Assembly (NCBI RefSeq): GCF_018977255.1
Contig: NW_024704760.1
Span: forward strand, 1,922,001-1,986,000
DNA: 64,000 bases
Direction of reading: 5' to 3'
Source: Callorhinchus milii
Taxonomy: Eukaryota
Shown: piece by piece, positions 1-63,670 of the stretch
How positions within the stretch are numbered: position 1 is the first letter of the stretch
How the letters are laid out: every line of letters starts with the position of its first letter
Translations under genes and position numbers: made by a program
The notes under the pieces: model-generated
Seen by the model: only the letters and a program-made list of their open reading frames with translations
The model's database searches: none
Told to the model about the DNA's origin: nothing

Positions 1-869
1 TGGGACGTCCTCCCGACGTGAAAAGCGCTATATCAAATGCGAGGAAAAAGAAAAGGAGATGTCTGGATCAAGGATGTCCTTTGGCCGATTGATCAAAAGA
101 CGGACAGAAAATCCAAACAACCAGCTCCCCATTTCAGCATCAAGTGGTTTCTTAAATGAGTTCAAGTGTCCTACCGTCTGTCAGGGAACCCATCCCAGCT
201 GTCAGTTACCGCTATATACTCCCTGACGACTGTCCAATATTCCCCTTCACATCCCTGAGCCCTGTCAGGCTGCTGCCTTCGTAAAACAATCGGAAGCACT
301 GTTGTGGATTGAAACTTTCTAGTCCACCAAACACTTTAATGACCTTTATTTGGTCGTGGAAACAAAGCAACCACTAAAAGCTCAACGGATTCCATGTGCA
401 GCTACACAAACGCGCTCCTTAAAACCACAAAAGCATCACTTCTCTTTTTTTGGAGTCAACAGTTTGCAAACGTTTGTACTTAAGGAAGTTGTAATATTGC
501 TATTTCGAGTGAGATTGCTCAATTAGTGGAATCGGACGTGGAGACGTGTTCTGGTAATGGCGACCGTGCGGGTCACAGAGCAGGGGGCAAGGTGGGGAGA
601 GGGAGGTGATGGGGGCAGGGAGGGAGGGGGAGAGGGAGAGGGCATTTACAGTGGGAGTTCTAGAGGGTGGGGACAGGGACAGTGTCTGAAAGTTCGGTTG
701 CCTGGGGTGGGGTGAGGACTGTGGAGCTGGTCCAGGTGTGTGGAGCGAAGGGGGAAGAGCAGGAGGACAGGCTGCAGGTCACAGAGGGAGGCAGATTCCT
801 TAAATAATGGAGATATTTTGGTTCGAAAATGGCACAGAAAATGGGTCGAATCGCTCTGTTTATTCTAAC

Positions 870-1100
870 TTCAATATCGGGGAAGCCCCATTTAAATGAC
901 CCTTTGATTTTATTAGGTAAGCGTTTACAGTCACGCAAACTGCCCTCACATGTAGCCTGGGGTCACTTTGTTCTCTTTCCACAACTGTACACGTAGACTT
1001 CCTCCATTGAACTTCCCTTTAGTTATTGGTTTGAAAACTGAGCTTTTTGGCTTGTGAAGCAACGATTCCTCACTTTGTGTTGCACATTTCCTGAAACTTC
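870..1100 (+). promoter_or_regulatory. Candidate leukocyte-type promoter motifs
   Basis: GGGGAAGCCCC at 879-889 (reverse strand fits NF-kB GGGRNWYYCC) and TTCCTC Ets/PU.1 core at 1066-1071. These short motifs are suggestive only. Confidence 0.3.
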
Positions 1101-1181
1101 TGATCAGAAAGCACTTCGACAGTGTATATACATACTGTCGTTTCTCGCGAAGACTGAATGTGGATCTCATCACTGGAAACT

Positions 1182-1221
1182 ATGAAGTTACTGGCTTTGC
1201 TGCTCCTCACTTTTATATCAG
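1182..1221 (+). CDS. Receptor exon 1 (signal peptide)
   Basis: ATG with A at -3, hydrophobic leader, donor G|GTAAGA, phase 1. Confidence 0.85.
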
Positions 1222-4200
1222 GTAAGAACATCCAAACCAAAATGTGCAATAGCTCCACCTTGCTCTCTATACTTGTGCGTTGTGTCCCTTCCAAATTAAC
1301 ATCAAGCGGCACCTCAGTGGCTCAGGGTGGAAATATTTTGTCTGCTCTGGCATTAAATTGTGAGACCCGAAGTCACAGGTTTCTGTCCAGGTCTTTGCTG
1401 AGCTGATCTCACTGGAGATGCTCCTGATCATTGCTCACAGGCTCCTTCTAGAAAATGTTCATGTTGGAATTGGGCTGAACTCGGCCTTCCGCCAGTTAAA
1501 TGACTGCCAACACTCTCACATGAACACTGAGCTATCAGCTATCCCACAGGTGCTGGCACAGGTGGATGGTTCACTGGAACTGTTCCACAGACTGACTGAT
1601 CAAGGCTTTGTTTATTTGTGTTTATCCAAACTTTTTCATGTTACGTTTAATCAACAGGTTCATCAGGACGAATCGAATCAAAAGTGCTAATGGCTAAGCT
1701 GGGAGAAAACATCATTATAAAGTGTCAATACCCGAAACTAACCAGGAAATCAAGGAATTGTTTGTGTAAACAAACCAAAGATAATTACTGCAATTATCTT
1801 GTATGTACTGATGGAGATTTCAACACAGTATATGATGAGAGAGCTTCAATGACTGGGAGCAATGATGGTCCAATTTCTGCTGCCGTGAAGACACTTGAAG
1901 AGAAAGACACTGGGATATACTGGTGTGGAAAAGATAATGGTAAAACTATAGAAATTTCAGAGGTTGTGCTGCTGAAAGTGTTCAAAGGTAAGAATGCCTT
2001 TACATTGACTGATACATTGCAAACCAAATTGTGCTGGAAAGTGCAAACTATACTGTGCTGAGTAGACAGGGTCCAACTTAAACACATCAGCGTTTACATC
2101 GCACTTTACCCAAAGGACTGTCCGAGTATAAACCTATTTACACTTCAATAGAGCCTGACACAAGATGGTCAGATACTTGTCAACAAACATCGCATCAGAT
2201 TGGACAATGAGTAGAAGCAAAATGTTCTCTCTTTTTAATGTCCTATTTTGTTCACCAACAGGTACAGAGAAACCAATGAAAAGACTGGTCGCTGCTGAAC
2301 TGGGAGAGCGAATCTCTGTGACGTGCCAATACAGCAAGAAACTGAGCGATTATAGCAAGTTCTTTTGTAAAGTAATCTCCAATAACGAGTGTACTCGTAT
2401 AGCAGATTCTAATGGGGCTGTGAATGAACCGTATAAAAGAAGAGTTTCCATTACTCATAAAGGGAAAAGTCAGGTCATTTCCATTATCTCAGCAAAGGAG
2501 GAAGATGCTGGGGAGTACTGGTGTGGAGCAGCAAGTGGGAATAAAGTAGAGTTCACACAGGTTAAGATACTACAGATCTCTCATGGTAAGAATCAAGAAC
2601 ATGTAGTACAAGATTATAATAAAAATGTGTTGAAAGTGAGTATTGTTTCCCTGAGGAATGAATATCAGGTGAGAGCTCTAAGAGCTCCAGGACTCTACCC
2701 CATGTGAAGGGCGCTATATAAATGCAAGTTGTTGTTATTGTTGCTACCAAGTGAACCCAGCTTATAACTATCCTGTCCCACTGAAGATTCGGGCAGTTAA
2801 TTTTTCCCCCATTTATTTCACATTCTCTTGGGGATGACGAGGGGCTGGTGATTATGAATTATCATCTGTGCTGCTGTATTTACTTTGATGTATCTCGCAG
2901 GATCAACCGCCTCATCGTTCATTGACACAACGTTCACCACAGCTATCACCAGACCTATCAACAGTTTTGCAGGAAGGTAAGATTTAATTATCAGTGCATC
3001 AATCGATCTATATAACTCTGTCTGAAGGCACACCTAAGACAGGTTACTATTAATGAGACAATGTGGGCAATCACAATTGGAGCAAGCATTTGGCAAACGG
3101 TTGAATTAAGCATCAACTTTCAAGTTGTATTTTTTTTAGTCGTTTTGAAAAGAAAACGTACAGAAAACTGGATTCAAAATTATGGCTGCATTTGTGAATA
3201 TAGGCCAAGTTCTGGGCATTTTGAGGTGCTCGATAAAGAGTGTAAATTTAGACCCAGGTGGAATCACCAAGGTGGTTTGTGTGGAACTGCAATAAGGATG
3301 ACTAAATACTCTAATAAAAGTGGTACCGAGTTATCTTTAGTGTCAGTGGTCAGATGCTTCGGTTTGGAAGGAATGTTTGGGCAGGTCAAATTGGCCCTTT
3401 CGCATGATATGCCCTCAAGTTCTTGACCAGGCCTTGGTCAGCTCGTCCACTTTAATCTTACAGGAGTTTTCCAAACGTGACAAAGTACGTGGTCATCGCA
3501 GTTGTGTTGGGATTTTCTTCTGTGGCCCTGTTTGCTGCCATATGTATATGGAAAAGCAGAAGTAAAACCAGAAAGAACGGTAAGCCACATTTAACTGACG
3601 GTTAATTTAATAGTAAGCCTTGGAACGAGATTGTGAAGAACACTTGGTTTTTAAATAGAGGACACATGTTCCTTCATGAGATTTCAAACAATGTGAGGAG
3701 TACAGTACTGTATTTCTTCGAGATTATAAACACTGGAGCTCTGATAGGCAGCAACTTATTTTCAACATTGAACACCCAAGTGAAATAATAGTGATAAAGC
3801 CCGTCTCCAGGTTTAACCAATTCTAAAAGCATCAGAACTGAAGATCAACGGCAGTAGAATATACTCAAACTGCCTTGTGTTGGATATGGCAATATCTTCA
3901 ATCCATGACTGTTTGTGGGGACGCTGCTGTGCGCAATTGGCTGCCGCGTTTCGCCCACAAATATACAGTCAATTCACTTTACAGTATATTCTGTGAAGCG
4001 CTTTGAGACGTCTAGAAGACGTGAAAAGCGCTTCATCAAATGCAAGGATTAATATTATTATGGCTTGAAGGAAATGGCTGCTCTTTCTGTGTGAGAGGAG
4101 ATGTGTAATATGGATACTCGGATCCTGTTTTGCACAATTCTGGCAGGCAGTGCCTTGGTAGAAACAGGAAGGGAGCTAAGTGATTGCTCATGTTCCCCAT

Positions 4201-5492
4201 GAAATATTCTTCGCATTTTTGTTTGGGTCAGCTAGATGTGGAAATCCATCACCATGCTTAAGAGTATCCAAACCAGAGATCCACATGTATATATCACCTA
4301 CACATGGGAACGTGCACTCTCTCTGAAATGGTGTACCCTGCTAACCTAATTTGAGAGTGTTATAGGTGCAGGTTGGTGAGAGCCAAGGCTTGGAGACCCC
4401 AGAGTGTACATTGGGGTAACTGTTAGAGCTTAACCAGCTAAACTCACCTAGCTTACCACTGAGAGTGCTGGATATCAAGCTAGGACCACAGTACCAGTTA
4501 GGGCTTTGACTTGCAGGTTAACAGGTGCCTAATGGGAAAATTTTCCTGCTCCCACTGACCAGTTTGCGTCTCTAAGCCCCGCTAATGAGCCTGAATGGCT
4601 CGTCTGTCACTAGGATTGCCTTGGGAATACCGTGGACTTGACTGGACCAACACAAAGGGTTGACTTGATTCTTAGCGATAAATGAGCGATCCGTTAATTG
4701 TTCTTTTTAAAAAAACAGAGCAGACTGTGCCAGACGATACAGAAAATCCCGCACCTCCCACAAAGGTAAAATGAATTTAACATATGTCTCCCCTTCTTCG
4801 ATGTTTTTGGTTTGCAGTACGTTTCACCCACAAAATATAGCCAATTCACTTTACAGTATATTTTGTGAAGCGCTTTGAGACATCTCAACGACGTGATAAA
4901 GAGCTCTATCAAATACAAGGATTATTATTAAATTTCCTATTAATTTTGTTCAGGATCTACAACTTCCCTAAAGCATTAACTAAAGTTGGCATCGACGTAA
5001 CTAACCACAGTGGTTTTAACATATCTGCAACTTCTTCCCACAAGGCGAAGCAGATTGCTGGAAACAATATTGGAATTGTGAAGTCATACTTTACCATTGG
5101 GTGCTTAGTTCTGTCGTGTCAAATTCTGTCCTTCTATGTTTCACGTTCTGGATAACTGCTGAAATTGAATCAGAAACAGCATTCCAGCACGAGACACTAG
5201 TTTTACCTACAAAATACAGTCACTCCATTTTACGGTAACTCCTGTGAAGCACTTTGAGACCTTGACAAAGTGAGGAGGCACTATATCAAATGCAAGGCTT
5301 ATACCTGTTACCGTTTCAAGCGAATAACCGAGTACTTGATTTTAGATTCACGGAGGAGATGAAACGATTATCTACGCCACTCTGAAGATTCAACCATCCA
5401 CTGTGCCTGTTGAAAGTGCTGCCAACTTGAGTGATGTTTCGGAATCCGTGGAGTATTCTGCCATTGTGTTCCCATCCTACCACGGTTACTAA
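1182..5492 (+). CDS. pIgR/CD300 (CMRF35)-family inhibitory receptor with two Ig V domains; join(1182..1221,1658..1987,2262..2585,2901..2976,3464..3579,4719..4765,5346..5492), 359 aa
   Basis: All introns are GT-AG with matching phases (1,1,1,2,1,0). The product has a signal peptide MKLLALLLLTFISG, two V domains with C-x7-C and D-x-G-x-YWCG, an S/T-rich stalk, an uncharged TM YVVIAVVLGFSSVALFAAICIW followed by KSRSKTRK, and tail motifs IIYATL and VEYSAI. The in-frame ATG at 1158 has weaker Kozak context than 1182. Confidence 0.88.
1658..1987 (+). CDS. Receptor exon 2 (Ig V domain 1)
   Basis: caacag| acceptor; GENIIIKCQY...LCKQTKDNYC...DTGIYWCG; donor AAAG|GTAAGA. Confidence 0.92.
2262..2585 (+). 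CDS. Receptor exon 3 (Ig V domain 2)
   Basis: caacag| acceptor; GERISVTCQY...KFFCKVISNNEC...DAGEYWCG; donor CATG|GTAAGA. Confidence 0.92.
2901..2976 (+). CDS. Receptor exon 4 (Ser/Thr-rich stalk)
   Basis: tctcgcag| acceptor; STASSFIDTTFTTAITRPINSFAG; AG|GTAAGA, phase 2. Confidence 0.85.
3464..3579 (+). CDS. Receptor exon 5 (transmembrane)
   Basis: ttacag| acceptor; SFPNVTKYVVIAVVLGFSSVALFAAICIWKSRSKTRKN; G|GTAAGC. Confidence 0.9.
3907..4060 (+). mobile_element. 5'-truncated SINE (core plus tail)
   Basis: Matches family core and tail. Further plus-strand copies at about 4820-4930, 5201-5300 and 5715-5775. Confidence 0.8.
4220..4490. repeat. Unclassified old dispersed repeat, copy 1
   Basis: Collinear similarity to 42550-42862. 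Confidence 0.7.
4719..4765 (+). CDS. Receptor exon 6 (cytoplasmic linker)
   Basis: aaacag| acceptor and AAG|GTAAAA donor; phase 1 to 0 bridges exon 5 to the ITIM exon exactly; EQTVPDDTENPAPPTK. Confidence 0.7.
5346..5492 (+). CDS. Receptor exon 7 (ITIM-bearing tail)
   Basis: tttag| acceptor; IHGGDETIIYATLKIQ...ESVEYSAIVFPSYHGY-TAA. Confidence 0.85.
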   Translation: MHGGDETIIYATLKIQPSTVPVESAANLSDVSESVEYSAIVFPSYHGY

Positions 5493-5686
5493 AAACTGTT
5501 CCAGAGAAGTCAAGCAGGAATTCAACAGCTTCTTTTGAGTTTCGCGAAGAATTCATTTGAGGGGGAACGGGTGTTATTACAGTGTAGGTTTACTTATTAA
5601 TTTCTTTTTAAAACATTGGGAGCGGACTGTAGAGGTCTTTTCAGTTCCTGTAGATTCCTACCTTGCCAAGTTTTACTGCTAGTAAT

Positions 5687-5692
5687 AATAAA
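5687..5692 (+). terminator. Candidate poly(A) signal of the receptor gene
   Basis: AATAAA about 195 nt after the stop codon. Confidence 0.45.
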
Positions 5693-8619
5693 ACTTAAGA
5701 TACAAACTATGTTTTAAGATGTCTCGAAGACATGATAAAGCACTATAACAAATGCAAGGATTATTATTATTATTATGTGCCATTTCTACATATCAGCTCA
5801 GTGCTTTAACAATGCCCATATCAAGTTATTTAAATCAGGTAACAATTGTGTCAGAGGTGTGTGTACAGCACAATTTTCAGCAGAGCATATGAAATGCATT
5901 GCGATTGCACTTTAATTACTCTTTGCGTTATTTACCTTTCTCTGCCAGAATTATACAGAATTATGTCTAACAACAGAATCAAGCCAACTAGCCTGTGCCA
6001 CTGTTTAGACTCCACATGAGCCTTCATCTTTCCATAAACCTTATTTTTATAAAAAGTGAAACTTGTTTGGAGGATGAGGAAAGACAAGGAAACATTTAGA
6101 CGTGCTTGTGCTCATTTAGGAGACCTTTATTAAGATTTAAAGACATTTTTCATCTTCTGCTCTCCATAGTACAGCAATTAGAAAGGTTGTATGCAATAGA
6201 AAACTTCCAAATAATATGCATAACAATAAAATGTAGTTTGAATACAACAATAAAAGTACTTCTCGATTATCTAAATCTGAAATTTTGTGAGGCTCCTCTT
6301 TACTGTTGATATACTCATTCACCGTCTCGTAATTTGAAGGCGTTACCCTATCCCACAATACTATTTGGGAGGTGTGACTGATGATGTTGAGGGAGTGGGG
6401 GGGTGTTGCTGCTTTTGAAACAGTACGAATGGTAAAGATTGTGAATGCGCGTCTACTTTGAAACCTTGAAGGCAATTCATCACCAACTTGACCAACTTGA
6501 CTCCTACGGTTGCAGAATGCCTCCTTATGAATGCATTAAAACAAGATAGTTTTCGTTCAAACACTCTGATGCATTCTACCCCCCCACCCCCTCCACCACC
6601 ACCACCATTTCTCCGTTGCTTCCAGTGGTCAAAGTTTTAAGTTTCATCTGAAACACGACATGCACAATACCACTCGTGTGTTGGACTTGCAACAGGGTAG
6701 CGTCCAAGTGCTCTGGGGCGCTATCCTGCGTGAGGGGTGCTATATAAATGCAAGTTGTTGTTACAATATAGTTGGGAGCCACCAAGTTGGATGACTGTGG
6801 TACTGTGGGTGTTTAGGAGTTGTGTTTGGAGGATATTGCACTATCCCTGCACTGTTGGGTTTATTTCACAAGTTACGTATATCGCAAATGGAAGTACATC
6901 AGAAGTGTTGTAATCCAAACCCATGACGCACAAATAATAAAATGGGGGAGGGGCAGTTGACCAGAATCCATCCATTATGAGGATAATTTAGTTCCTTATG
7001 TTTTCATTGCAAAATATTAGGCAACTTCTCTTTAGTCACACTCATGTGTTAGGCTACGAACAGAATTTGTTCCTACTTTTTTTGAACTCCACACTGAACG
7101 GAGTTGCTCTAAGTTTTTGCAAGGACTTTGGAAACAGTAAAACACGCAGGGTACAACATATGGCACATTTTCATCAAAACGATGCACTCACTTTGAAAAC
7201 AACCGTGAATGGATATAAAAACAAACAACACCCAGTGTTTCTGGTCGGCAATGGGCTTTATCGATTCCACTCTTAAAACAGCAGAGAGCATAAGGTAATG
7301 GATTTCAGTGGCATATAATGTACATCATTTCAATCTCTACCTGTTGAAAGTATTTCATACAACTGTTTATTTGACCTGGGCCAGGAAACCGGTCTGATAC
7401 TATCCGCTAAAGTGGATCCCACCCACCTACACTGGATCATTACCATAGCACTTGCTTTTCTGTTGTACACTGATTCACGCAGGACAATAATGTACTTGGT
7501 AATTATCGAAATGCTACAAATTATCTCAAACATATTTCGCCCATGGATTCACACCCATTCTCCAGATGAGTATTTAATCTAGATTTCCGTAACTCACCAT
7601 CAGAGGAGTGTGCCACGTTCTCGCTGCTTGGACTCAGTTGAGATGAAAGTGGAATTCTCTCCCCTCTCTAATCAAATACGCTAAAAGAAGTGAAGTGTAA
7701 CATCACTCACGTGGATTTCAGATTGCATTTTAGAGAACAACAGATACTGGTTGCCTGAAGACACAAAAGACAGGAAAATGCGTCAGATCCACTGAATATG
7801 GATGAATGATTCGCCTGGGAAGAATCGTGTTTATTATAATCAGCTCCAAATACCTCCCTCCCACCCAACAATTGGTTGAAACAAATCGGCTGTCCAGTTA
7901 TCTCCAACAATGGTTGGCCCTACTAAGGCATGTGTATTATCAGGATTATTTAGTTAAAATACCTTTAACTTCCTGGTTTTGCAAGCTGCAATTAACTTTT
8001 CAGGCTGTGGAAACCTTGCAAAGGGACATTTTCCTCCTCTTTCCAACCTTTTATCAAATGAACAAAGGATTATGGAAAATCAGATTTCGATTGTGAATTG
8101 GGATCTCTCTTATTCAAGTGTGTATTGGTGCTGTGAATTTAGTCATTGGAAATGAAAGAGTCAAATGTACCCATGTCCATTTACTCACCTAGAGTACCTT
8201 TCTCAAATGTATTCTCGCAATAGTTTCCTGGTGGCAATTCACAAAAAACCATGAGAGAAGTCAGCCATCGTGATGTATACTGGACATAGAGTTATCACAT
8301 CTGATAGGCACCTTTCTTTAGCAAATAGTTAATTTGTCTCCTCTGATGTTCTGCACCTTGAAATGAAAGACTCTTCTGACTTTTAATTCTAAATTCTATC
8401 CACGGTTAAAAAACAGGACTTGAAATTTGTGGACCTAAAATGCAAACTTGAGAACACTGCCTACAAAAGGCTTGGGCTACCTTCTTTCATGCCACCCCTG
8501 TTAAGAGATTAATTATTTAATGAGTTTCTAACCTCTGAGCTCTTTATCTCAGGTAGGTCATAGGGGCAAAAGGAAGGGAAAACAACATCAACAAATTACA
8601 TTTACACAGCACCTTTCAA

Positions 8620-11092: not shown

Positions 11093-41154
<30,062 letters not shown>

Positions 41155-41633: not shown

Positions 41634-41956
41634 AATAATAATAATAATAATCCTCGCATTTTGATATAGCGCTTTTCACGTCGGGAGGACGTCCCAAAGC
41701 GCTTCACAGAACACACTGTAAAGTGAATTGACTGTATATTTGTGGGCGAACGCGGCAGCCAATTGCGCACAGCAATGTCCACAAACAGTCGTAGATTGAA
41801 AATGACCAATTTATTATTGTTTTTGGTTTTGGAGGATTATTATTAGGCTCTGTGTGGAGTAAGGAAACTTGCCCGAGGTTTCGCCCTCTGCCTGGAATTG
41901 AACTCAGGTCTCTCACTTGCAAAGCGAGTGCTCTAACCAATGAGCTACAGGACTCC
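41634..41956 (-). mobile_element. Full-length SINE, same family, directly upstream of the AHCYL1 promoter
   Basis: Head, Deu-like core and (ATT)n tail all present. Confidence 0.85.
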
Positions 41957-44222: not shown

Positions 44223-47200
44223 CTGCAACAGAGATTAGAATTTGAGAGCTTTAATGGGATCATTAATTCAACGACAATGGAAGAAACTGAATGGCTGAAA
44301 AGCTAAACAAAGAGCGTCGAGTTAACATGCTCCCAGGTCTCTGCCAATCCTACCACCACCAAAGCAAAAGCTGGCGTACATGGAGCTGAGGCCTATGGTG
44401 ACTGCAGTAAATTTTCTTCTTCTTCCGAGAGAAAGTAATTAAGTGTTTGCTCAAAGGTTGTTGCTACGACTGGGGACCCAGTATGAAAAATATTGGCAAA
44501 GGAGCACACATTTTTAAAATTCACCTTGCGTAACTATGTCATCAGTCGGATCGGGAGGATTTTTATTCCTACAATGTACCAGTTTGAATTCATCTCGTCT
44601 TGCAGTCACCTCTGCCACGTAACCAGCTCACCGCGGATCCACCCCAACACAAGTGGGTATTGAGCTACCAAAATCCAAGGTAACTGAAATTGTGAATTAC
44701 TCCATGCTGCGGCCAAATTAGCTGCTCTTTCGGCTTCAAAACTGTCCCAGAGATTGTGGGAGAGCAGTTAAGTCTACTTACCTCAAAGCGCTTGAGAAAA
44801 GCTTGCAAGTTTTTGAATTCATCCAACGACTTGGCTTCAAAGATAAGATGTTCATCCAACACTTCATACAGCAAAAAGTCCACAAATGTGATCTAAAATT
44901 TTTTTTTGGGGGGGGGGGGGGGGAGAAGAAAAGTGCATCAACAACGACGTGGGCTTATATAGCGCCCTCCGCACAGAGCAGCGCCTCAGAGCGCTTAAGA
45001 ATAAAGAAGCATAAAGAAATTAATCCAGAACTCTGCCGGGTGTAGCACTTCAGGACAATAAGATGCCCGTGTGAACAATAATTTTAGGAGCCAAGAGAAG
45101 CTATTTGAGCCAGCAAACCCGTCTGGTTTTGATTCAAGCTGCACCGCATGTCATCACAACATTCCCAAAGTCGGGTGGTTTATATTACTTCTCGCGCAGA
45201 AACTACGATGCTCAAGAAATGCCGTATTACACATCCTTCGCACACTTGATCCAAGCTTCACTGGAAGTCCTGCAAGTGTTCGGATTTTCTCAAGCTGCTC
45301 ACAAGGATGTGTTGTAAAGGTAATAATGGGTCAATGAGGCAAGGAGCAGCCTACCTCTCGCTGCAAAGTTATGCAATCACTCAAGGCAATACTATCAGAT
45401 TAGTAATAATAATAATCCTGGCATTTGATATAGCGCCCGATCACGCCTTCAAGAGGTCTCAAAGCGCTTCACAGTACACTGTAAAGTGTATATTTTGCGG
45501 GCGAAAGGCAGCAGTCAGTTGCACATGGCAGTGGCCCACAAACAATACTGTGTATCAAGCAATTTTGTTTCCAGATGATTGCATTCGTTCCTAGTCGAGC
45601 CACATAGGAAGCGCAAAAAGATAAGGTTTCTAATCTGCAGTAATAAGAACCCTTGCATTTGATATAGCGCCTTATCATGTCGTTGAGACGTCTCAAAGCG
45701 CTTCACAGAATCTATTGTAAAGTGGAATGATCGTAATTTGCAGGCGAAACCTCTTGGCCTAAGAACTCACCTTCTCACCAGCAAACCAGGGCTTTTCCGA
45801 AAGAAATGTTGAAAACTGCTTCAGCAAATCTGGCAGCTTCTCCACATAACCGGGCTTCAGTTTAACCTACCACGAGGCAGAGAATAAACAAAAAGGCTCA
45901 GGAATGCTTTCCTAGTTTTAAATTATACCAGAAATAAATAGTGTACAACTCACACATTCAACACTTATTCCTTTAAGTCCTAGTTTGTTCAGAGTACAGG
46001 GGTTAGACGCCAGAGGTTAAGTCTGTCCTCCCTTCACTCAGCATCACAGGAAAAAGGCAATTATAGCAAAAATAAATACAAATCCTGAGGTCAAAAATAC
46101 CATTTAAATAGCTTTAAATCTACAAGACGTAGGGTAAGTGTGACTTATGTTCAGGTCACAACTTTTATCAATCTACTAGCAGAACCCCACCGCAGCAGGG
46201 CCTTAGTCGCCAGGTTTTGTGACAAAGCAACATACATTAATTCACTTATTTCCTAACACTGGAGCATTCAGACTTTAACCCTTTTCCAAAAGGAAATGAA
46301 CACGCATACAAAAAAAAATAGCTTTGAGCAGGCAGCTGCTACTGCGAAACTCACAAAGTCGGGGCTGTAACAGACGCGGAAAAATTCCATGCGAAAGTCC
46401 ATACATTGGTTCTCGATAACATCAACACGGATTTTTTCATCCTCTACCTCCCCACCTGCAGAGAAGAGTTTAAGAAGACTACTGTGAAGTGTTCAAAACC
46501 AACTATAATAAACCAAATTCTGTGACTTCCATGTCACACTTTGTGCTTCACTGGGCAAGTCACTGAAATTTTGGGATGAACCATACAGTGGGAGGTCATG
46601 TGGGGAATATTCACCATTTTATCACAACTCTCCTGAGGTACTTAAGGGAATTATTATTCCCTGACCGCTTTTCCGGAGGTAATAATTCCTTCAAAAAAAT
46701 AATAGTAAATTGGTCATTCATTTCCTGACTGTGTGTGGGACACTGCTGTGCGCAATTGGCTGCTGTGTTTCGCCCACAAAATGCAGTCAATTCACTTTAC
46801 AGTATATTCTGTGAACCACTTTTAAGACGTCTCAAAGACATGGTAAGGCGCTATGTCAAATGCAAGGATTATTTTTTTTATTGGAAGTACTGCAAAGAAG
46901 CACTTCTCAAAACAGCATCTTTAACCGCTCTTATCAATCTGTATTTGTAACCAATGGAACGTAGAAATGAAATAAAAACTCACAAAGGCCGTGCTTCCTG
47001 GCTATGTAGCGCATGATTGCGTTGCTCTGGACAATTTTCACATCGCCGTCAATCAAATAAGGAAGCTGGAAAGAACCATTACAAATAATTACCAAAAAAA
47101 AACCCAGCCTCAGCTAAACAAAGGCTGCTCATTAACGTTCAGCTACCTTTGCTGGAAGCGAAGGGACACGTTTGATTTAATTTCCAGCACATTCAAGTAC

Positions 47201-50200
47201 TTAACCATCGTTGCGTAAAGCAAGTGCAAACTTAAAACTTCTGCTGCAACAGCCTAGTGTCAGATAAAGGACCACATCGCTGAAGAACATTGAGCCAAAT
47301 CTCTATGATAAAACCTGCCTCCGAACAAACAGTGTGGGGGGGAGTGGGGGGAAGAGAACGGGGGTTAAAGACCTCACCTTCGAAAGGTTTATTAAATACC
47401 TACATTTGGGAAATCCAGTCCAAGGGTGAACTTCTCTTTAAGCCAGGAGCCTCTGTCATATTCTGGGGCTGCAACAGAATAAAAAAGTTTTTCCCCCCCT
47501 CTCAAATATTGTACCAGTGCAAAGCTCCATTATTAAATCGTTCAAAACCTTAATACATAATATATTAATGTTCACGTCCAAATAAGTCACGTTACTTACA
47601 GTGGCCACATTAACTTAATAAATGTTAAGACGCCATATCACTCTTTGCTTTCCCTTAAACCGGGGGTCTGGTCGATTGCCACCGGGTACGATTTTTCAAC
47701 CACAAAACAACCACTTTACAGTATATCCTGTGAAGCGCTTTGAGACGTCTAAAGACGTGATAAGGCACTGTGTCAAATGCAAGGATTATTATTACTATAT
47801 GATCAAAAAGGCCTAAAGGAAGGAGTGGTAGAACTGGGTAGTTATTTAGTCCAATTGAAAACAAAGCCAGTTGTAGAAAGTGTTTCATGCATATCGAAAT
47901 AAAAATATAAACTCTGGAAATCTGTATGTAAGTGCTAGTTCCAATTCTATTTGCACCCAGAGGGCAATGTGTGGAATGGCGAAAGCCTCATTTTCTCTAC
48001 CTAGCTACCAACTACCAGGAGACTTTGGACTGTAGTTAAATATTTATTATTAGGCAAGAGGCATTTGGCAGCAGCTTGAAAAAACATCAGACACTTTTTA
48101 ATACGCTGAACATTTATATGCTTCCAGTCAGTTGGGTGAAGCTCTTCTGAGATATCCTCCCAATGTGAAAAGCACTAAATAATGTAAATTACAAATATGC
48201 ATAGCGTCACTGCTTCATGCTGCGCGCCTTTCATCACAGAGCACGAAGGGAAAGCAAGAGAAGTGATTCTCTACGTGTGCTGCTGTATTTGTACGAAAAG
48301 GATGTGAATCTCCAAAGTACTACCGACAACCCATTTGTCGTATCACCGCGACTCAATTCTGTTGCCGCTCAGCAGACATTTTTCCCTTCACAGTTTGAAT
48401 TCAGAAGAAATTTCACCTTCGCCAACGGAATACAGCTTCTCTTCGTACGGAGTTTCTGTGTATTCTAACAGCAGGCGGATCGGCTGAGCCAGCTGCAAAA
48501 CAGAAAGCCTCAGTCAGATATTTTTTGGTCAACAACAACTTGGATTTATACTCACTCAGAATAGCGTCCCAGAGCGCTTGATCAGCTGGCCGTCCGGCAC
48601 AAGCGGAAACCCCTCGCCGTCCCACTGATCCTCGGTTCAGTTAGGAATCGAGATGATTAAAAAAAAATATTCAAACTGCAACGTCGCCAAATTTAGAACT
48701 ATTTTTAATCCATTTCCTATAAACTGCTGTTCTGGTTTTTTTTAAAAAAAAGGTTGCAAATAACATTTCCTAAATTCACTTGCGTTTCTGGATGTTCTGA
48801 ATTGCACTTCTGTAAATTCAAAGTCGTTGGGGAGAGAGAAAGAGGGAGAGAAAGAGAGACGTTAAAGAATCCCAGGTGCAGGTTATCAGAATAGGCAGAA
48901 GCCAATGAGGTCAAGTAATTTACTGGTTTAATAGCTGTGCAGTAAATTAGCACTTTGAATAATCAGGTCACCCACTCAGTGTGCAACCACAAAGCATCTT
49001 CCCACCGGCAACAAACAAGTCTTAAACAGTTATAAGTTCTGTAAATAAGTCCAGATAAAAGCAGAAATCGCAGATTCTGTGTTTGAAACCTTTCCACCGG
49101 CATCATCTGAACTGATCTGATTTTTCCCTTTAGAAAAGCGTCTAATTTTTAATCGTAGTAAACCACGTCACGAAAGCAGAAGTGATTCACAACGCTCACT
49201 TGATGATAATAATCCTAAAGCAGAGAGCAACATCTCCCTGGGATGAAACTTGGCTCCAAACACGAGACACCTGGCAGAGATGCAACAAAAGCAAGGCTGT
49301 GCATTTAGAAATGTCATACTCTGGCAGGGAATGTGGGCTGATGAACTTTATGTATTGGGAGACAAAGGAGAGTTGTTTTTTAATTCTACTCTAATTCCGC
49401 CATTCTGGGATGGCAACAGCGCAAAAAACAACAGGTAAATTCATCCTAAGGTGGACATTGCCGCAAAAAACTGATCAGATCTTGGGAGTCCCTGTAAAAA
49501 AGGGTGACTATACTTCCCCGAATCAGGGATTGCCAAATTTGCCCCCTCTTGAGTTCAGCAACAAACTACAAACCAGAACAATAAAACTCTAAAAACACTC
49601 ATCAGAGAAACACAACCATTAATCCAACACCCTTTTCCAGCAACAGCCGGCATCAGGAATAATAATACCATTTGATACAACATCCTATCATGTCTTCTAC
49701 GTATCTCAAAAGAGCTTCACAGAATGTACTGACTGCATTTTGCGAGTGAAATGCAGCGGTGAATTGCACACAGCAGCGACCCACAAACAGTCATGGATCG
49801 AGGGACCGAATCACTTTTATTTTACTTCACGGTTTTTTTTGAAGGAAGGGACTCATTTTCTTTGAAGGGATTATCGCTCCCGGACATGCGATCCACCAAT
49901 CGACTAAACTGCCAAGGAAACACAGGCGTGTGGCGTAAGGAAAGTTTTCGCCCCGGCCCGGGAATCGCACCCAGGCGAGTGCTCTAACCACAGCACGTAC
50001 GGACTTCCACGTGGTCCTGCGGTATACCGCCAGGATTTGTGGCGAGTTAAATGTTTTAATATATACGTGTGTGTATATGCGCACACGCACACGCACGCGC
50101 GCACACGATGTGTCCCCGGATTTGGTTTACAAAGTACGGTCACCCTAAAGCCTCGCGATCCGTTCTACCGGCGGCTGTTCTCTCAAACTCTGCTCCTGGG

Positions 50201-51153
50201 AATTCTGAACTACAGACTCTGCGGAAAGATCCGCACAGGTTTAGGTACAAACTCCACAGCAATAATTAGAATAATCTCCACTGCCCCCCACCCCCACCCT
50301 CCTTCATGTCACAGGAAGCAATACACTCTCTTAAGATTAGCCAACGTGCAAAATAAACTCTGGTGCAGAGATCTGCAATTCCCAGTCACAGACAAAGGGG
50401 GAATGGAACAAAAGAACTCTTGTTCCAAAGCAAAACTATGTACACACACAGACACACAAATATATATATATATAGATAGATACACACAGTATATTTGTAG
50501 CCACAAAACACTGTTCCTCCAGATACAGGAAAGGAGCCTTTTACTGAACCGGATTTGATTTAAAAATATATGATTGAGCCAAAAGTGCATTTTATATGGG
50601 GTTGGAATGCAGTGGCTTTCGAGTTTCTGTGNNNNNNNNNNNNNNNNNNNNNNNNNNNNNNNNNNNNNNNNNNNNNNNNNNNNNNNNNNNNNNNNNNNNN
50701 NNNNNNNNNNNNNNNNNNNNNNNNNNNNNNNNNNNNNNNNNNNNNNNNNNNNNNNNNNNNNNNNNNNNNNNNNNNNNNNNNNNNNNNNNNNNNAGAGACA
50801 GAGACCGACAGAGAGACATACAGACAGACAGAGAGATACAGACCCAGAGACAGACCCAGAGACATACAGACAGACAGACAGACAGACAGAGAGACAGAGA
50901 GATACAGACCCAGAGACAGACAGACAGACAGAAAGAAAAACAAGACAGAAAGGAAGGAAAGATAGAAAGACAAAGGAAAGGAAGACAGAAAGAAAATAAA
51001 TTAGAGAGACAGAGAGAGAGAGAGAGACAGAGAACGAAAAGCCATTTTTTATTTTACTTTTCTTTCCCACACACTCCACACACGAACATGAAGCGCAAAT
51101 GCAAAACGCACACTCACCCCTCGAATATCCCAGTAACCCAACTTCATGACCAT
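44130..51153 (-). CDS. GSTM: Glutathione S-transferase mu class, 8 exons, 660 nt, 219 aa
   Basis: [12 protein letters not shown] (catalytic Tyr), mu-loop [17 protein letters not shown] and C-terminal [16 protein letters not shown]. Exon sizes 36/76/65/82/101/96/111/93 join in frame. Confidence 0.96.
44782..44892 (-). CDS. GSTM: GSTM exon 7
   Basis: [37 protein letters not shown]. Confidence 0.95.
45402..45750 (-). mobile_element. Two 5'-truncated SINEs in GSTM intron 6
   Basis: Family tails at about 45402-45560 and 45640-45750. Confidence 0.7.
45771..45866 (-). CDS. GSTM: GSTM exon 6
   Basis: [32 protein letters not shown]. Confidence 0.95.
46355..46455 (-). CDS. GSTM: GSTM exon 5
   Basis: [34 protein letters not shown]. 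Confidence 0.95.
46728..46875 (+). mobile_element. 5'-truncated SINE, GSTM intron 4
   Basis: Family core and tail. Another copy at about 47690-47795. Confidence 0.75.
46984..47065 (-). CDS. GSTM: GSTM exon 4
   Basis: [27 protein letters not shown]. Confidence 0.95.
47404..47468 (-). CDS. GSTM: GSTM exon 3
   Basis: [22 protein letters not shown]. Confidence 0.95.
48417..48492 (-). CDS. GSTM: GSTM exon 2
   Basis: [25 protein letters not shown]. Confidence 0.95.
49660..50000 (-). mobile_element. SINE with head in GSTM intron 1
   Basis: Tail, core and GGGAATCGCACCCAGG B-box remnant. Confidence 0.75.
50632..50793. other. Assembly gap (162 N) in GSTM intron 1
   Basis: Run of N. Confidence 1.
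50794..51030. repeat. (GACA/GAGA)n compound microsatellite
   Basis: Direct reading; it abuts the gap. Confidence 0.9.
51118..51153 (-). CDS. GSTM: GSTM exon 1
   Basis: ggccATGG Kozak; [12 protein letters not shown]|GTGAGT. Confidence 0.95.
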
Positions 51154-57696: not shown

Positions 57697-63397
<5,701 letters not shown>

Positions 63398-63529
63398 CTG
63401 GAATGGAGAATAACGCAACAAAACACCAAACATACATACGTCAGTGCCACAGGGGGACCCGGGTTGCAAATACCCAGGGGAGCCACGTACGTTTATACCA
63501 TAAAGCGGAACCGTTAAGAGGGTTCCCTG

Positions 63530-63670
63530 CGTCCTGGTGGATAAAACGTTTCGCACCGCAAAAAGTACGGTCGATTCGCTTTACGCTGTACACTGTGAAG
63601 CGCTTTGAGACGTCTCGAAGACGTGATGAGGCGCTGTATCAAATGCAAGGATTATTATTATTATTATTAT
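63530..63670 (+). mobile_element. 5'-truncated SINE
   Basis: GTGAAGCGCTTTGAGACGTCTCGAAGACGTGATGAGGCGC...(ATT)n. Confidence 0.75.

Follow-up and report, generated by a model that had tools for sequence, protein, structure and literature searches.

A two-V-domain, ITIM-bearing receptor gene beside AHCYL1 in the elephant shark and its place in the pIgR/CD300/TREM superfamily

Sharks, the elephant shark (Callorhinchus milii) included, lack a pIgR homologue according to a published survey (PMC4016189), a statement that is repeated in a 2026 review (PMC13337447). They do possess J chain and secretory IgM. The initial annotation of a 64-kb elephant-shark window (the whole stretch of DNA analysed here) described a receptor gene with two V domains and an ITIM tail and, while remarking that no bona fide pIgR had been established in cartilaginous fish, with which the literature concurs, suggested that the gene may descend from the pIgR/FCMR/FCAMR group rather than from CD300. 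Is this gene a pIgR, a forerunner of pIgR, or a member of another branch of the same V-domain superfamily?

A seven-exon gene for a type I receptor with two V domains

The coding sequence spans exactly 1182-5492 on the forward strand and is divided into seven exons separated by GT-AG introns throughout. Exon 1 (1182-1221, donor CAG/GTAAG) carries the start codon and the signal peptide MKLLALLLLTFIS, and exons 2 (1658-1987) and 3 (2262-2585), both phase 1-1, encode V-set domains 1 and 2 (D1 and D2). These are followed by a Ser/Thr-rich stalk (exon 4, 2901-2976; pLDDT <50 in the AlphaFold model), by an exon that combines an NVT N-glycosylation site, the transmembrane (TM) helix (residues 270-299 of the P0001 model) and the basic stop-transfer sequence KSRSKTRK (exon 5, 3464-3579), and by a short cytoplasmic exon that agrees with the public model XP_007897679.1 (exon 6, 4719-4765). 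Exon 7 (5346-5492) encodes the cytoplasmic tail with ITIM 1 (IIYATL, 5367-5384) and ITIM 2 (VEYSAI, 5448-5465), and closes with a TAA stop at 5490-5492. The first AATAAA past the stop (5687-5692, forward strand) is, as a consensus match, a candidate polyadenylation signal. The product is a type I protein of 359 amino acids, or of 367 if translation starts at the in-frame upstream ATG at 1158, which the NCBI models take as the start.

The receptor is already present in public automatic models, under the name 'CMRF35-like molecule 9' (the older NCBI name) or 'polymeric immunoglobulin receptor'. We consider it very improbable that the gene is non-functional or a product of mis-assembly. Three SINE copies do lie within its last two introns (4-5.3 kb), and the terminal exons of NCBI isoform X2 are missing from the window, the C-terminal 54 amino acids of that isoform finding no real match there by tblastn or by six-frame 5-mers. 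However, the frame is complete, all seven exons are canonically spliced, the product is 98% identical over its full length to the independently derived XP_007897679.1, and orthologues across Chondrichthyes keep the same exon-domain plan; the gene is thus complete and intact, as first annotated. An Rfam scan of 1-12 kb found nothing.

Pfam V-set matches two stretches of the product (E=1.1e-16), and the cysteines fit the double-disulfide pattern that had been noted for both domains. D1 has cysteines at 36, 48, 50, 58, 63 and 103, comprising the canonical C36-C103 pair, the extra C50-x7-C58 pair and a further C48/C63 pair that is specific to Callorhinchus; D2 has cysteines at 145, 159, 167 and 211 (C145-C211 and C159-x7-C167). 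The TM segment YVVIAVVLGFSSVALFAAICIW contains no charged residue, in agreement with the uncharged TM and two ITIM-type motifs of the initial annotation. The AlphaFold model has a pLDDT of 71, with the ectodomain mostly at 73-93. The best PDB sequence matches of the V domains are pIgR, CD300/CLM, TLT-1, NKp44 and FCMR, which, together with the Pfam result, places the protein in the pIgR/CD300/TREM-type group.

An orthologue family with a conserved ITIM tail and Arg-TM partner forms

One-to-one orthologues were found in at least 10 sharks and rays, the little skate (P0049) among them, so that the two-V receptor is kept in all three chondrichthyan lineages: sharks, rays and chimaeras. The window gene and its orthologues have two V domains, and the Mustelus receptor has three. 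In our domain tree D1 and D2 of the window gene are each basal to a chondrichthyan clade. The starred D2 clade (98/82) follows the order of the species tree, with the chimaera first and then sharks and rays. The D1 clade (89/74) is compatible with the species tree, though unresolved in part, and sits within a starred set of 15 rows that includes three domains of coelacanth H3BGP7 (95/88). The two clades, with D2 matching the species tree, point to one orthologue family. There is one copy in the elephant-shark window, and no other elephant-shark gene was among the top 150 matches listed in a deep search; the catshark has at least two tandem copies and probably three.

The tail follows a conserved layout, (D/E)xI(I/T)Y(A/S)T(V/L), then IQP, then SESVEYS(T/A)(L/I), which is seen in Callorhinchus, Pristiophorus, Scyliorhinus, Pristis and Hemiscyllium as well as in the coelacanth 'CMRF35-like molecule 1'. 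Both ITIMs and their spacing are kept in the shark, ray and coelacanth relatives, and relatives from sturgeon and loach share the same two-ITIM plan. Tail motifs are ITYSTV, VIYSNL and VEYSTL in Pristis and IKYATL, VIYSNL and VEYSTL in the coelacanth. A lone sequence may contain ITIM-like hexamers by chance, but conservation across roughly the whole chondrichthyan radiation argues against this here. Since several elasmobranch members (P0014 and P0160 among them) have no ITIMs, not every copy is inhibitory. Partner forms have an arginine in the TM segment, within the motif W..(I/L/F)RW(I/L/V), and were found in Callorhinchus (isoform X2), Mustelus, Hypanus, the coelacanth and sturgeon.

A conserved double-ITIM tail combined with Arg-TM partners is indicative of a paired inhibitory/activating receptor of leukocyte type and not of a transcytosis receptor. 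The family follows the paired activating/inhibitory pattern of skate MDIR, zebrafish PIGRL, CD300 and chicken TREM-B1. We conclude that the product of the window gene is probably an inhibitory immune receptor within the pIgR/CD300/TREM V-domain superfamily, and that the gene is the elephant-shark orthologue of a two-V receptor common to all chondrichthyan lineages. Its closer affinity may lie with the pIgR, CD300, TREM or MDIR lineage.

Domain scores, phylogeny and neighbours

Were the gene a cartilaginous-fish pIgR orthologue, or the direct pre-duplication ancestor of pIgR, we would expect its product to carry polymeric IgM/J chain after binding it, or at least to serve as an Fc-type receptor for it. 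We regard this as improbable, even though pIgR tops the PDB rankings by sequence and by fold, J chain occurs in sharks where no pIgR is known, and the NCBI pipeline uses the name of pIgR. The high pIgR scores are sums over four to five domains. Taken domain by domain, pIgR scores no better than CD300 or TLT-1: D1 gives 30 bits with TLT-1, 28.7 with pIgR D1 and 27-28 with CD300, and D2 gives 39-41.5 bits with CD300 and 30.6 with human pIgR D1, the score of 45.9 against teleost pIgR chain 5f1s being one against a two-domain chain. In a Foldseek search with the AlphaFold model pIgR came first and scFvs next, a ranking that reflects only the presence of two tandem V domains and therefore does not discriminate between families.

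The reference set of the domain tree consisted of tetrapod pIgR domains and a single CD300LF (sloth, P0196), with TREM, FCMR, FCAMR and MDIR unrepresented. Word-index homologue searches with the protein itself, with a 36-sequence alignment and with the coelacanth relative returned no mammalian, avian or frog CD300, TREM, FCMR or FCAMR and no skate MDIR, except for this sloth protein. Across a branch with 96/84 support, both shark domains fall on the side of tetrapod pIgR D1/D3/D4 and away from CD300LF. To this extent the tree bears out the proposed descent from the pIgR group; however, AU tests leave standing both a grouping of CD300LF with the receptor family (p=0.11) and a tree in which tetrapod pIgR is monophyletic without the family (p=0.099), and the 64-kb window holds no 1q32-type marker (FCAMR/FCMR/IL10 block). 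Furthermore, no shark domain groups with pIgR D5 in the tree, whereas descriptions of teleost pIgR give it D1 and D5.

The neighbours inside the window are of another type. The terminal coding exon of an AHCYL gene lies on the reverse strand at 11093-11099 (G TAT TAG, ..R-Y-stop, with the stop at 11095-11093), and Pfam AdoHcyase matches fall on the reverse-strand exons of this neighbour; the two genes are arranged tail-to-tail, 5.6 kb from stop to stop. Two exons compared with human structures 3MTG and 3GVP show mixed residues at the positions diagnostic for AHCYL1 and AHCYL2 and so do not discriminate between the two, and we call the neighbour AHCYL1, as the initial annotation had done, because GST-mu and AMPD adjoin. 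AHCYL1, GST-mu and AMPD, the only neighbours present in the window, are 1p13.3-type and not 1q32-type, and neither 6p21.1-type (TREM) nor 17q25-type (CD300) neighbours are found in its 64 kb. A scan of 42-57 kb detected no G-alpha motifs (GNAI3/GNAT2), and a partial ORF and Pfam look of a general kind at the same interval gave no match to CSF1. No AHCYL exon occurs within 10 kb of the Scyliorhinus (L001, L004) or Pristis (L002) orthologues, but flanks of that length are too short to be informative in such large genomes.

Synteny with chicken had been brought forward in favour of pIgR. Both AHCYL1 (PMC3492294) and PIGR (PMC4016189) are indeed on chicken chromosome 26, but so is the TREM cluster including TREM-B1 (PMC4788293), so the linkage of AHCYL1 and PIGR does not point to pIgR in particular. 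Nor does the tail fit: a pIgR-type tail serves sorting and transcytosis, with no ITIMs and no charged-TM partners, and the elephant-shark receptor has a conserved ITIM tail and Arg-TM activating relatives. Descent from pIgR is unproven, a pIgR-type transport function is unlikely, and the automatic name 'polymeric immunoglobulin receptor' should not be taken as evidence of a shark pIgR.

Membership of the CD300 (CMRF35-like) lineage, the second V domain then being a lineage-specific duplicate, appears unlikely, if less so than a pIgR. It would suit the older NCBI name of the elephant-shark gene, the name 'CMRF35-like molecule 1' of the coelacanth relative, the CD300/CLM proteins that head the single-domain PDB scores of D2, the comparably multi-ITIM tail of sloth CD300LF (ISYASL, TEYSTI), the pairing of ITIM-bearing with charged-TM members in the receptor family, and the AU test that the CD300LF grouping survives. 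On the other hand, the best tree sets CD300LF apart from the receptor family, a single V domain is the rule in CD300 proteins where the window gene has two, and the window offers no 17q25-type neighbour.

A tentative case, the least weak of the three, can be made for the TREM/TLT lineage, in which the receptor would be the counterpart of the two-V, ITIM-bearing TREM-B1/B2 of chicken thrombocytes and myeloid cells. TREM-B1 as described in PMC4788293 corresponds in every point, with its pair of V-set domains, its uncharged TM and its long ITIM tail bearing the motifs TIYAAI, VMYVNI and VEYATL, to be compared with those of Pristis and the coelacanth. Chicken TREM genes share chromosome 26 with AHCYL1, and TLT-1 is the top single-domain PDB match for D1, by a margin that is within noise. 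This case draws on the resemblance of motifs and on TREM-B1 as described in print, the domain tree having no TREM; D2 matches CD300 with a higher score than NKp44, no TREM/TLT chain is among the 60 best D2 matches listed, and the window contains no 6p21.1-type marker.

Proposed signalling and comparison with known receptors

Whichever label applies, we propose that the product works as the inhibitory arm of a paired system, probably on leukocyte-type cells. Its two membrane-distal V domains would bind a ligand, perhaps a phospholipid or some other non-Ig molecule if CD300 and zebrafish PIGRL are a guide. The tyrosines of the two conserved ITIMs would then become phosphorylated and could recruit SHP-1/SHP-2-type phosphatases, and these are predicted to damp signalling by ITAM-coupled receptors, including partner forms of the same family in which a short tail and an Arg-containing TM take the place of the uncharged TM and the ITIM tail.

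As this locus shows, Chondrichthyes have clear members of the pIgR/CD300/TREM domain family, and these are conserved throughout the class. The conservation of both the ITIM tail and the Arg-TM partner further suggests that the paired inhibitory/activating design was already in place in the common ancestor of jawed vertebrates. The gene is a real, ordinary-looking inhibitory receptor, and it provides a concrete single-copy gene in a compact genome for the study of Ig binding, lipid binding and SHP recruitment. A bolder conjecture, to which we give little credence, is that this AHCYL1-linked two-V gene, kept as an orthologue across all cartilaginous fishes and with close relatives in the coelacanth, stands for the pIgR lineage in its undivided, ancestral form, with an ectodomain that already binds J-chain-containing IgM. 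If that were true, the inhibitory tail of an ITIM-bearing leukocyte Fc-type receptor would have been lost on the way to the transcytosis receptor of bony vertebrates.

Among known systems, pIgR shares with the elephant-shark receptor the tandem V-set domains with an extra C-C' disulfide and one exon per domain, is its best overall sequence and fold match and, in teleosts, likewise has two domains; it differs by having neither an ITIM tail nor an Arg-TM partner. CD300A and CD300LF resemble it in the V domain with two disulfides, the multi-ITIM inhibitory tail and the paired activating relatives, but they have a single V domain and belong to a 17q25-type block, and the sloth CD300LF domain lies on the other side of the best tree. 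Chicken TREM-B1 and TREM-B2 correspond, by description, in the two V-set domains, the uncharged TM and the long ITIM tail ending in VEY(A/S)T-L, and their family likewise includes a charged-TM activating relative. TREM-B1 differs in having an extra ITSM, the elephant-shark protein keeping only two of the three tyrosine motifs, and the flanking genes on which the placement of the chicken genes in the TREM cluster is based do not appear in the elephant-shark window. In experiments TREM-B1 became phosphorylated on tyrosine, recruited SHP-2 and inhibited the degranulation of thrombocytes (PMC4788293). Skate MDIRs (cloned sequences such as ABC86796.1, ABC86797.1 and ABC86799.1; Cannon et al. 2006, as described in PMC3031540) and zebrafish PIGRL (Kortum et al. 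2014, as cited in PMC4664633), the latter a pIgR-like family that binds phospholipids, are multigene families, unlike the single copy in the elephant-shark window. As far as their published descriptions go, they are nevertheless fish families of CD300/TREM/pIgR-type V domains with both activating and inhibitory members, and the elephant-shark receptor family has the traits described for the cartilaginous-fish MDIRs.

Receptor gene and its product

Reading of window positions 1-7000, with splicing by eye and by script, gives a gene of seven exons on the + strand, encoding the signal peptide (1182-1221), two V domains (D1, 1658-1987; D2, 2262-2585), a stalk (2901-2976), the transmembrane (TM) segment (3464-3579) and a cytoplasmic tail (4719-4765 and 5346-5492, the latter with the stop codon). 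All introns are GT-AG, and the V exons show the 1-1 phase typical of Ig-superfamily genes. Translation yields 359 aa, or 367 aa if an in-frame upstream ATG at 1158 is used. It matches the Pfam V-set in two stretches (E=1.1e-16); in addition to their canonical B-F cysteines, D1 and D2 have a C-x7-C pair each (C50/C58 and C159/C167, respectively), the TM contains no charged residue, and the last exon encodes two ITIMs, IIYATL and VEYSAI, both matching (I/V/L/S)xYxx(I/V/L). The gene is real and intact, and the description given in the initial annotation (two V domains with C-x7-C pairs, an uncharged TM and two ITIM-type motifs) is borne out on every point.

In the AlphaFold model, computed from a 14-sequence alignment, both V domains are confident (block means mostly 73-93), the TM segment forms a helix, and the stalk and the tail are disordered. 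Foldseek ranks human and mouse pIgR as its top matches and scFvs next, a ranking that says no more than 'two tandem V domains'. D1 (exon 1658-1987) holds two cysteines beyond the usual four, C48 and C63, missing from the shark, coelacanth and ray-finned-fish relatives that made up the alignment; they may form a third, lineage-specific disulfide or be free thiols. A G-rich low-complexity tract of the GGGA/GGGGT type is found at 560-790, about 400-600 bp upstream of the start codon.

A word-index search returned the Callorhinchus milii entries XP_007897679.1 ('CMRF35-like molecule 9'), 98% identical to the receptor over its full length, and P0002 ('polymeric immunoglobulin receptor isoform X2'). 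Since these public models match the receptor, the gene already exists as an automatic model in the public genome; our literature search found no paper describing it. Akula et al. 2014 reported a PIGR homologue to be absent from elephant shark and ten other sharks (PMC4016189), which a 2026 review restates for sharks (PMC13337447). Exons 1-4 are common to P0002 and the window gene, with 2 aa differences; P0002 then closes with a 54-aa end (residues 266-319) with an Arg-containing TM (..WDILRWIFFGV..). Neither tblastn nor a six-frame 5-mer search matched an exon for this end anywhere in the 64 kb: the explanation is either exons located beyond the window or a difference between assemblies or haplotypes.

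Genomic neighbourhood

An AHCYL gene (11093-41154, − strand) lies tail to tail with the receptor gene, the CDS ends being 5.6 kb apart. Its AdoHcyase exons are spread between about 24 kb and 11.2 kb, and its last coding exon is tiny (11099-11093, − strand), encoding only R-Y-stop. The putative start codon at 41154 lies within a CpG island (GC 0.62, CpG o/e 0.94), and exon 1, with a donor near 40858, encodes a long stretch of low complexity that includes a poly-Gly run. At positions that distinguish human AHCYL1 (3MTG) from AHCYL2 (3GVP), the shark protein has a mixture of residues, so that the sequence by itself leaves the assignment ambiguous. Further along, also on the − strand, are a glutathione S-transferase mu-like gene (about 44668-47529; Pfam GST_N and GST_C on exon ORFs 46937-47113 and 44668-44892, and a further GST exon, YDRGSW..FPN, at 47395-47529) and, in GC-rich sequence, an AMPD2-like AMP deaminase gene (about 58389-63580, with AMP-deaminase exons at 58.4-63.6 kb) that extends past the right end of the window and is matched by Pfam AMP_deaminase in three exon ORFs (E 8e-35 to 2e-24). 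In human, AMPD2, the GSTM cluster, CSF1, AHCYL1 and STRIP1 lie together at 1p13.3, and we know of no GSTM or AMPD genes in the AHCYL2 region at 7q32. Because the GST and AMPD neighbours fit this map, we take the AHCYL gene to be AHCYL1. The proposed tail-to-tail arrangement is thus confirmed by the − strand AdoHcyase exons, its AHCYL1 label coming through the human map.

Between the GST and AMPD genes, low-complexity sequence rich in CT/GA holds a 162-N run (assembly gap or mask) at 50632-50793. An interspersed, SINE-like repeat with the core GAAGCGCTTTGAGACGTC, followed by ..GCGCTATATCAAATGCAAG.., is present in 27 copies on both strands of the 64-kb window, against 0.04 expected by chance (examples at 3995-4012, 4867-4884, 5246-5263, 13363-13380, 41688-41705 and 63597-63614); the receptor gene has three of them in its last two introns.

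No gene of the 1q32 type, the human PIGR block, is found within the 64-kb window, and the 10-kb flanks of the elasmobranch orthologues, short for such large genomes, contain no AHCYL exon. The argument for descent from the pIgR linkage group had invoked chicken chromosome 26. Published maps do place both PIGR (PMC4016189) and AHCYL1 (PMC3492294) there, but the same chromosome also carries the TREM cluster (PMC4788293), so the AHCYL1-PIGR co-location fits pIgR descent, TREM descent or a common precursor.

Orthologues and domain phylogeny

An exhaustive phmmer search with the receptor gave 895 matches, of which the closest labelled ones are described here. These include two-V-domain homologues in Pristiophorus, Heterodontus, Scyliorhinus, Hemiscyllium, Pristis, Narcine, Hypanus and Leucoraja, and a Mustelus homologue with three V domains, of which the first two are duplicates of the D1 type; their automatic names are 'pIgR-like', 'CMRF35-like' or 'uncharacterized'. 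Next closest are three coelacanth genes, followed by 'pIgR-like/CMRF35-like' genes of sturgeon, paddlefish and teleosts and by tetrapod pIgR. In Scyliorhinus torazame (CM105038.1, 11.67-11.79 Mb; loci L001, 10001-39422, and L004, 10001-45961), at least two, and probably three, genes of the family stand in tandem on one strand, among them P0163 with an ITIM tail and P0014 with a divergent tail.

The domain tree (IQ-TREE, LG+C20+F+G4 by PMSF, unrooted) was built from 81 V domains of 35 labelled proteins, excised by HMM (111 columns), with sloth CD300LF as the one CD300 and TREM, FCMR, FCAMR and MDIR absent. Window D2 branches at the base of a chondrichthyan D2 clade (98/82) whose branching matches the species tree, the chimaera first and rays and sharks after. 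D1 is likewise basal in a chondrichthyan D1 clade (89/74), whose order is compatible with the species tree and in part unresolved, and which is nested in a 15-row set, starred in the tree, also containing three coelacanth H3BGP7 domains (95/88). Together, these placements indicate one orthologue family older than the chimaera-elasmobranch split. Rays also have a second, distinct two-V-domain family (P0190, Hemitrygon akajei). In the tree, both of its domains are remote from those of the window family and stand next to a Hyla protein, and the larger group to which this pair belongs has the CD300LF branch as its next neighbour outwards. More than one lineage of the pIgR/CD300/TREM receptor group is therefore present in cartilaginous fishes.

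The initial annotation had favoured the pIgR/FCMR/FCAMR linkage group over the CD300 cluster, and one branch (96/84) leans that way: it unites tetrapod pIgR D1, D3 and D4 (with the long branch of rabbit D2), the two shark clades and the coelacanth domains, against tetrapod pIgR D5, actinopterygian pIgR-like D1/D2, CD300LF, the Hyla protein and the Hemitrygon family. This support is weak, because the tree is unrooted, its references comprise one CD300 and none of the four families named above, and AU tests reject neither 'family + coelacanth + CD300LF' (delta lnL 9.3, p=0.11) nor monophyly of all tetrapod pIgR domains (p=0.099). Single-domain PDB scores are just as undecided between families: D1 scores 30 bits with TLT-1, 28.7 with pIgR D1, 28.3 with NKp44, about 27.5 with CD300 and 22.6 with FCMR, and D2 scores 39-41.5 with CD300, 30.6 with pIgR D1 and 45.9 with the two-domain teleost pIgR chain 5f1s. 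The very low E-values against full-length pIgR arise because scores are summed over four or five domains. CD300 as the closest modern lineage, favoured by the D2 scores and set apart by the 96/84 branch, is a doubtful reading.

Cytoplasmic tail and paired receptor forms

The tail and TM are the most informative part of the comparison. Over its whole length the window tail can be aligned with those of Pristiophorus, Scyliorhinus-b, Pristis, Hemiscyllium and coelacanth 'CMRF35-like molecule 1', in a common layout of an acidic patch, I(I/T)Y(A/S)T(V/L), IQP, in some species VIYSNL, and SESVEYS(T/A)(L/I)xF at the C-terminus; the two-ITIM plan is also kept in sturgeon and loach relatives. Callorhinchus isoform X2, Mustelus, Hypanus, coelacanth P0127, sturgeon P0166, P0175 and P0177 and two unlabelled matches instead have a short tail and a TM with W..(I/L/F)RW(I/L/V). 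The coexistence of ITIM-tail and Arg-TM forms is the signature of a paired inhibitory/activating receptor family.

With good confidence, the best explanation is an inhibitory receptor of the pIgR/CD300/TREM superfamily that bears ITIMs, and transport of the pIgR kind is an unlikely function. That it is a pIgR orthologue or direct ancestor binding polymeric Ig, as the 96/84 branch might suggest, is improbable. The remaining probability, once TREM-B and CD300 have had their shares, goes to an MDIR-type branch, either pre-split or chondrichthyan-specific, with descent from the pIgR side but no Ig binding counted here too. With this gene, the question whether Ig binding in the pIgR/CD300/TREM group predates bony vertebrates can be put to a clean test.

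In architecture and tail, the receptor matches paired receptors of the skate MDIR, zebrafish PIGRL and chicken TREM-B type. TREM-B as its closest modern lineage, which the TLT-1 score and the chromosome 26 TREM cluster would fit, is possible at rather long odds. Compared through its published description, chicken TREM-B1 is the closest characterised functional analogue we found: its two V-set domains and uncharged TM are accompanied by the motifs TIYAAI, VMYVNI and VEYATL, and experiments have demonstrated its phosphorylation, its recruitment of SHP-2 and its inhibition of thrombocyte degranulation (PMC4788293).
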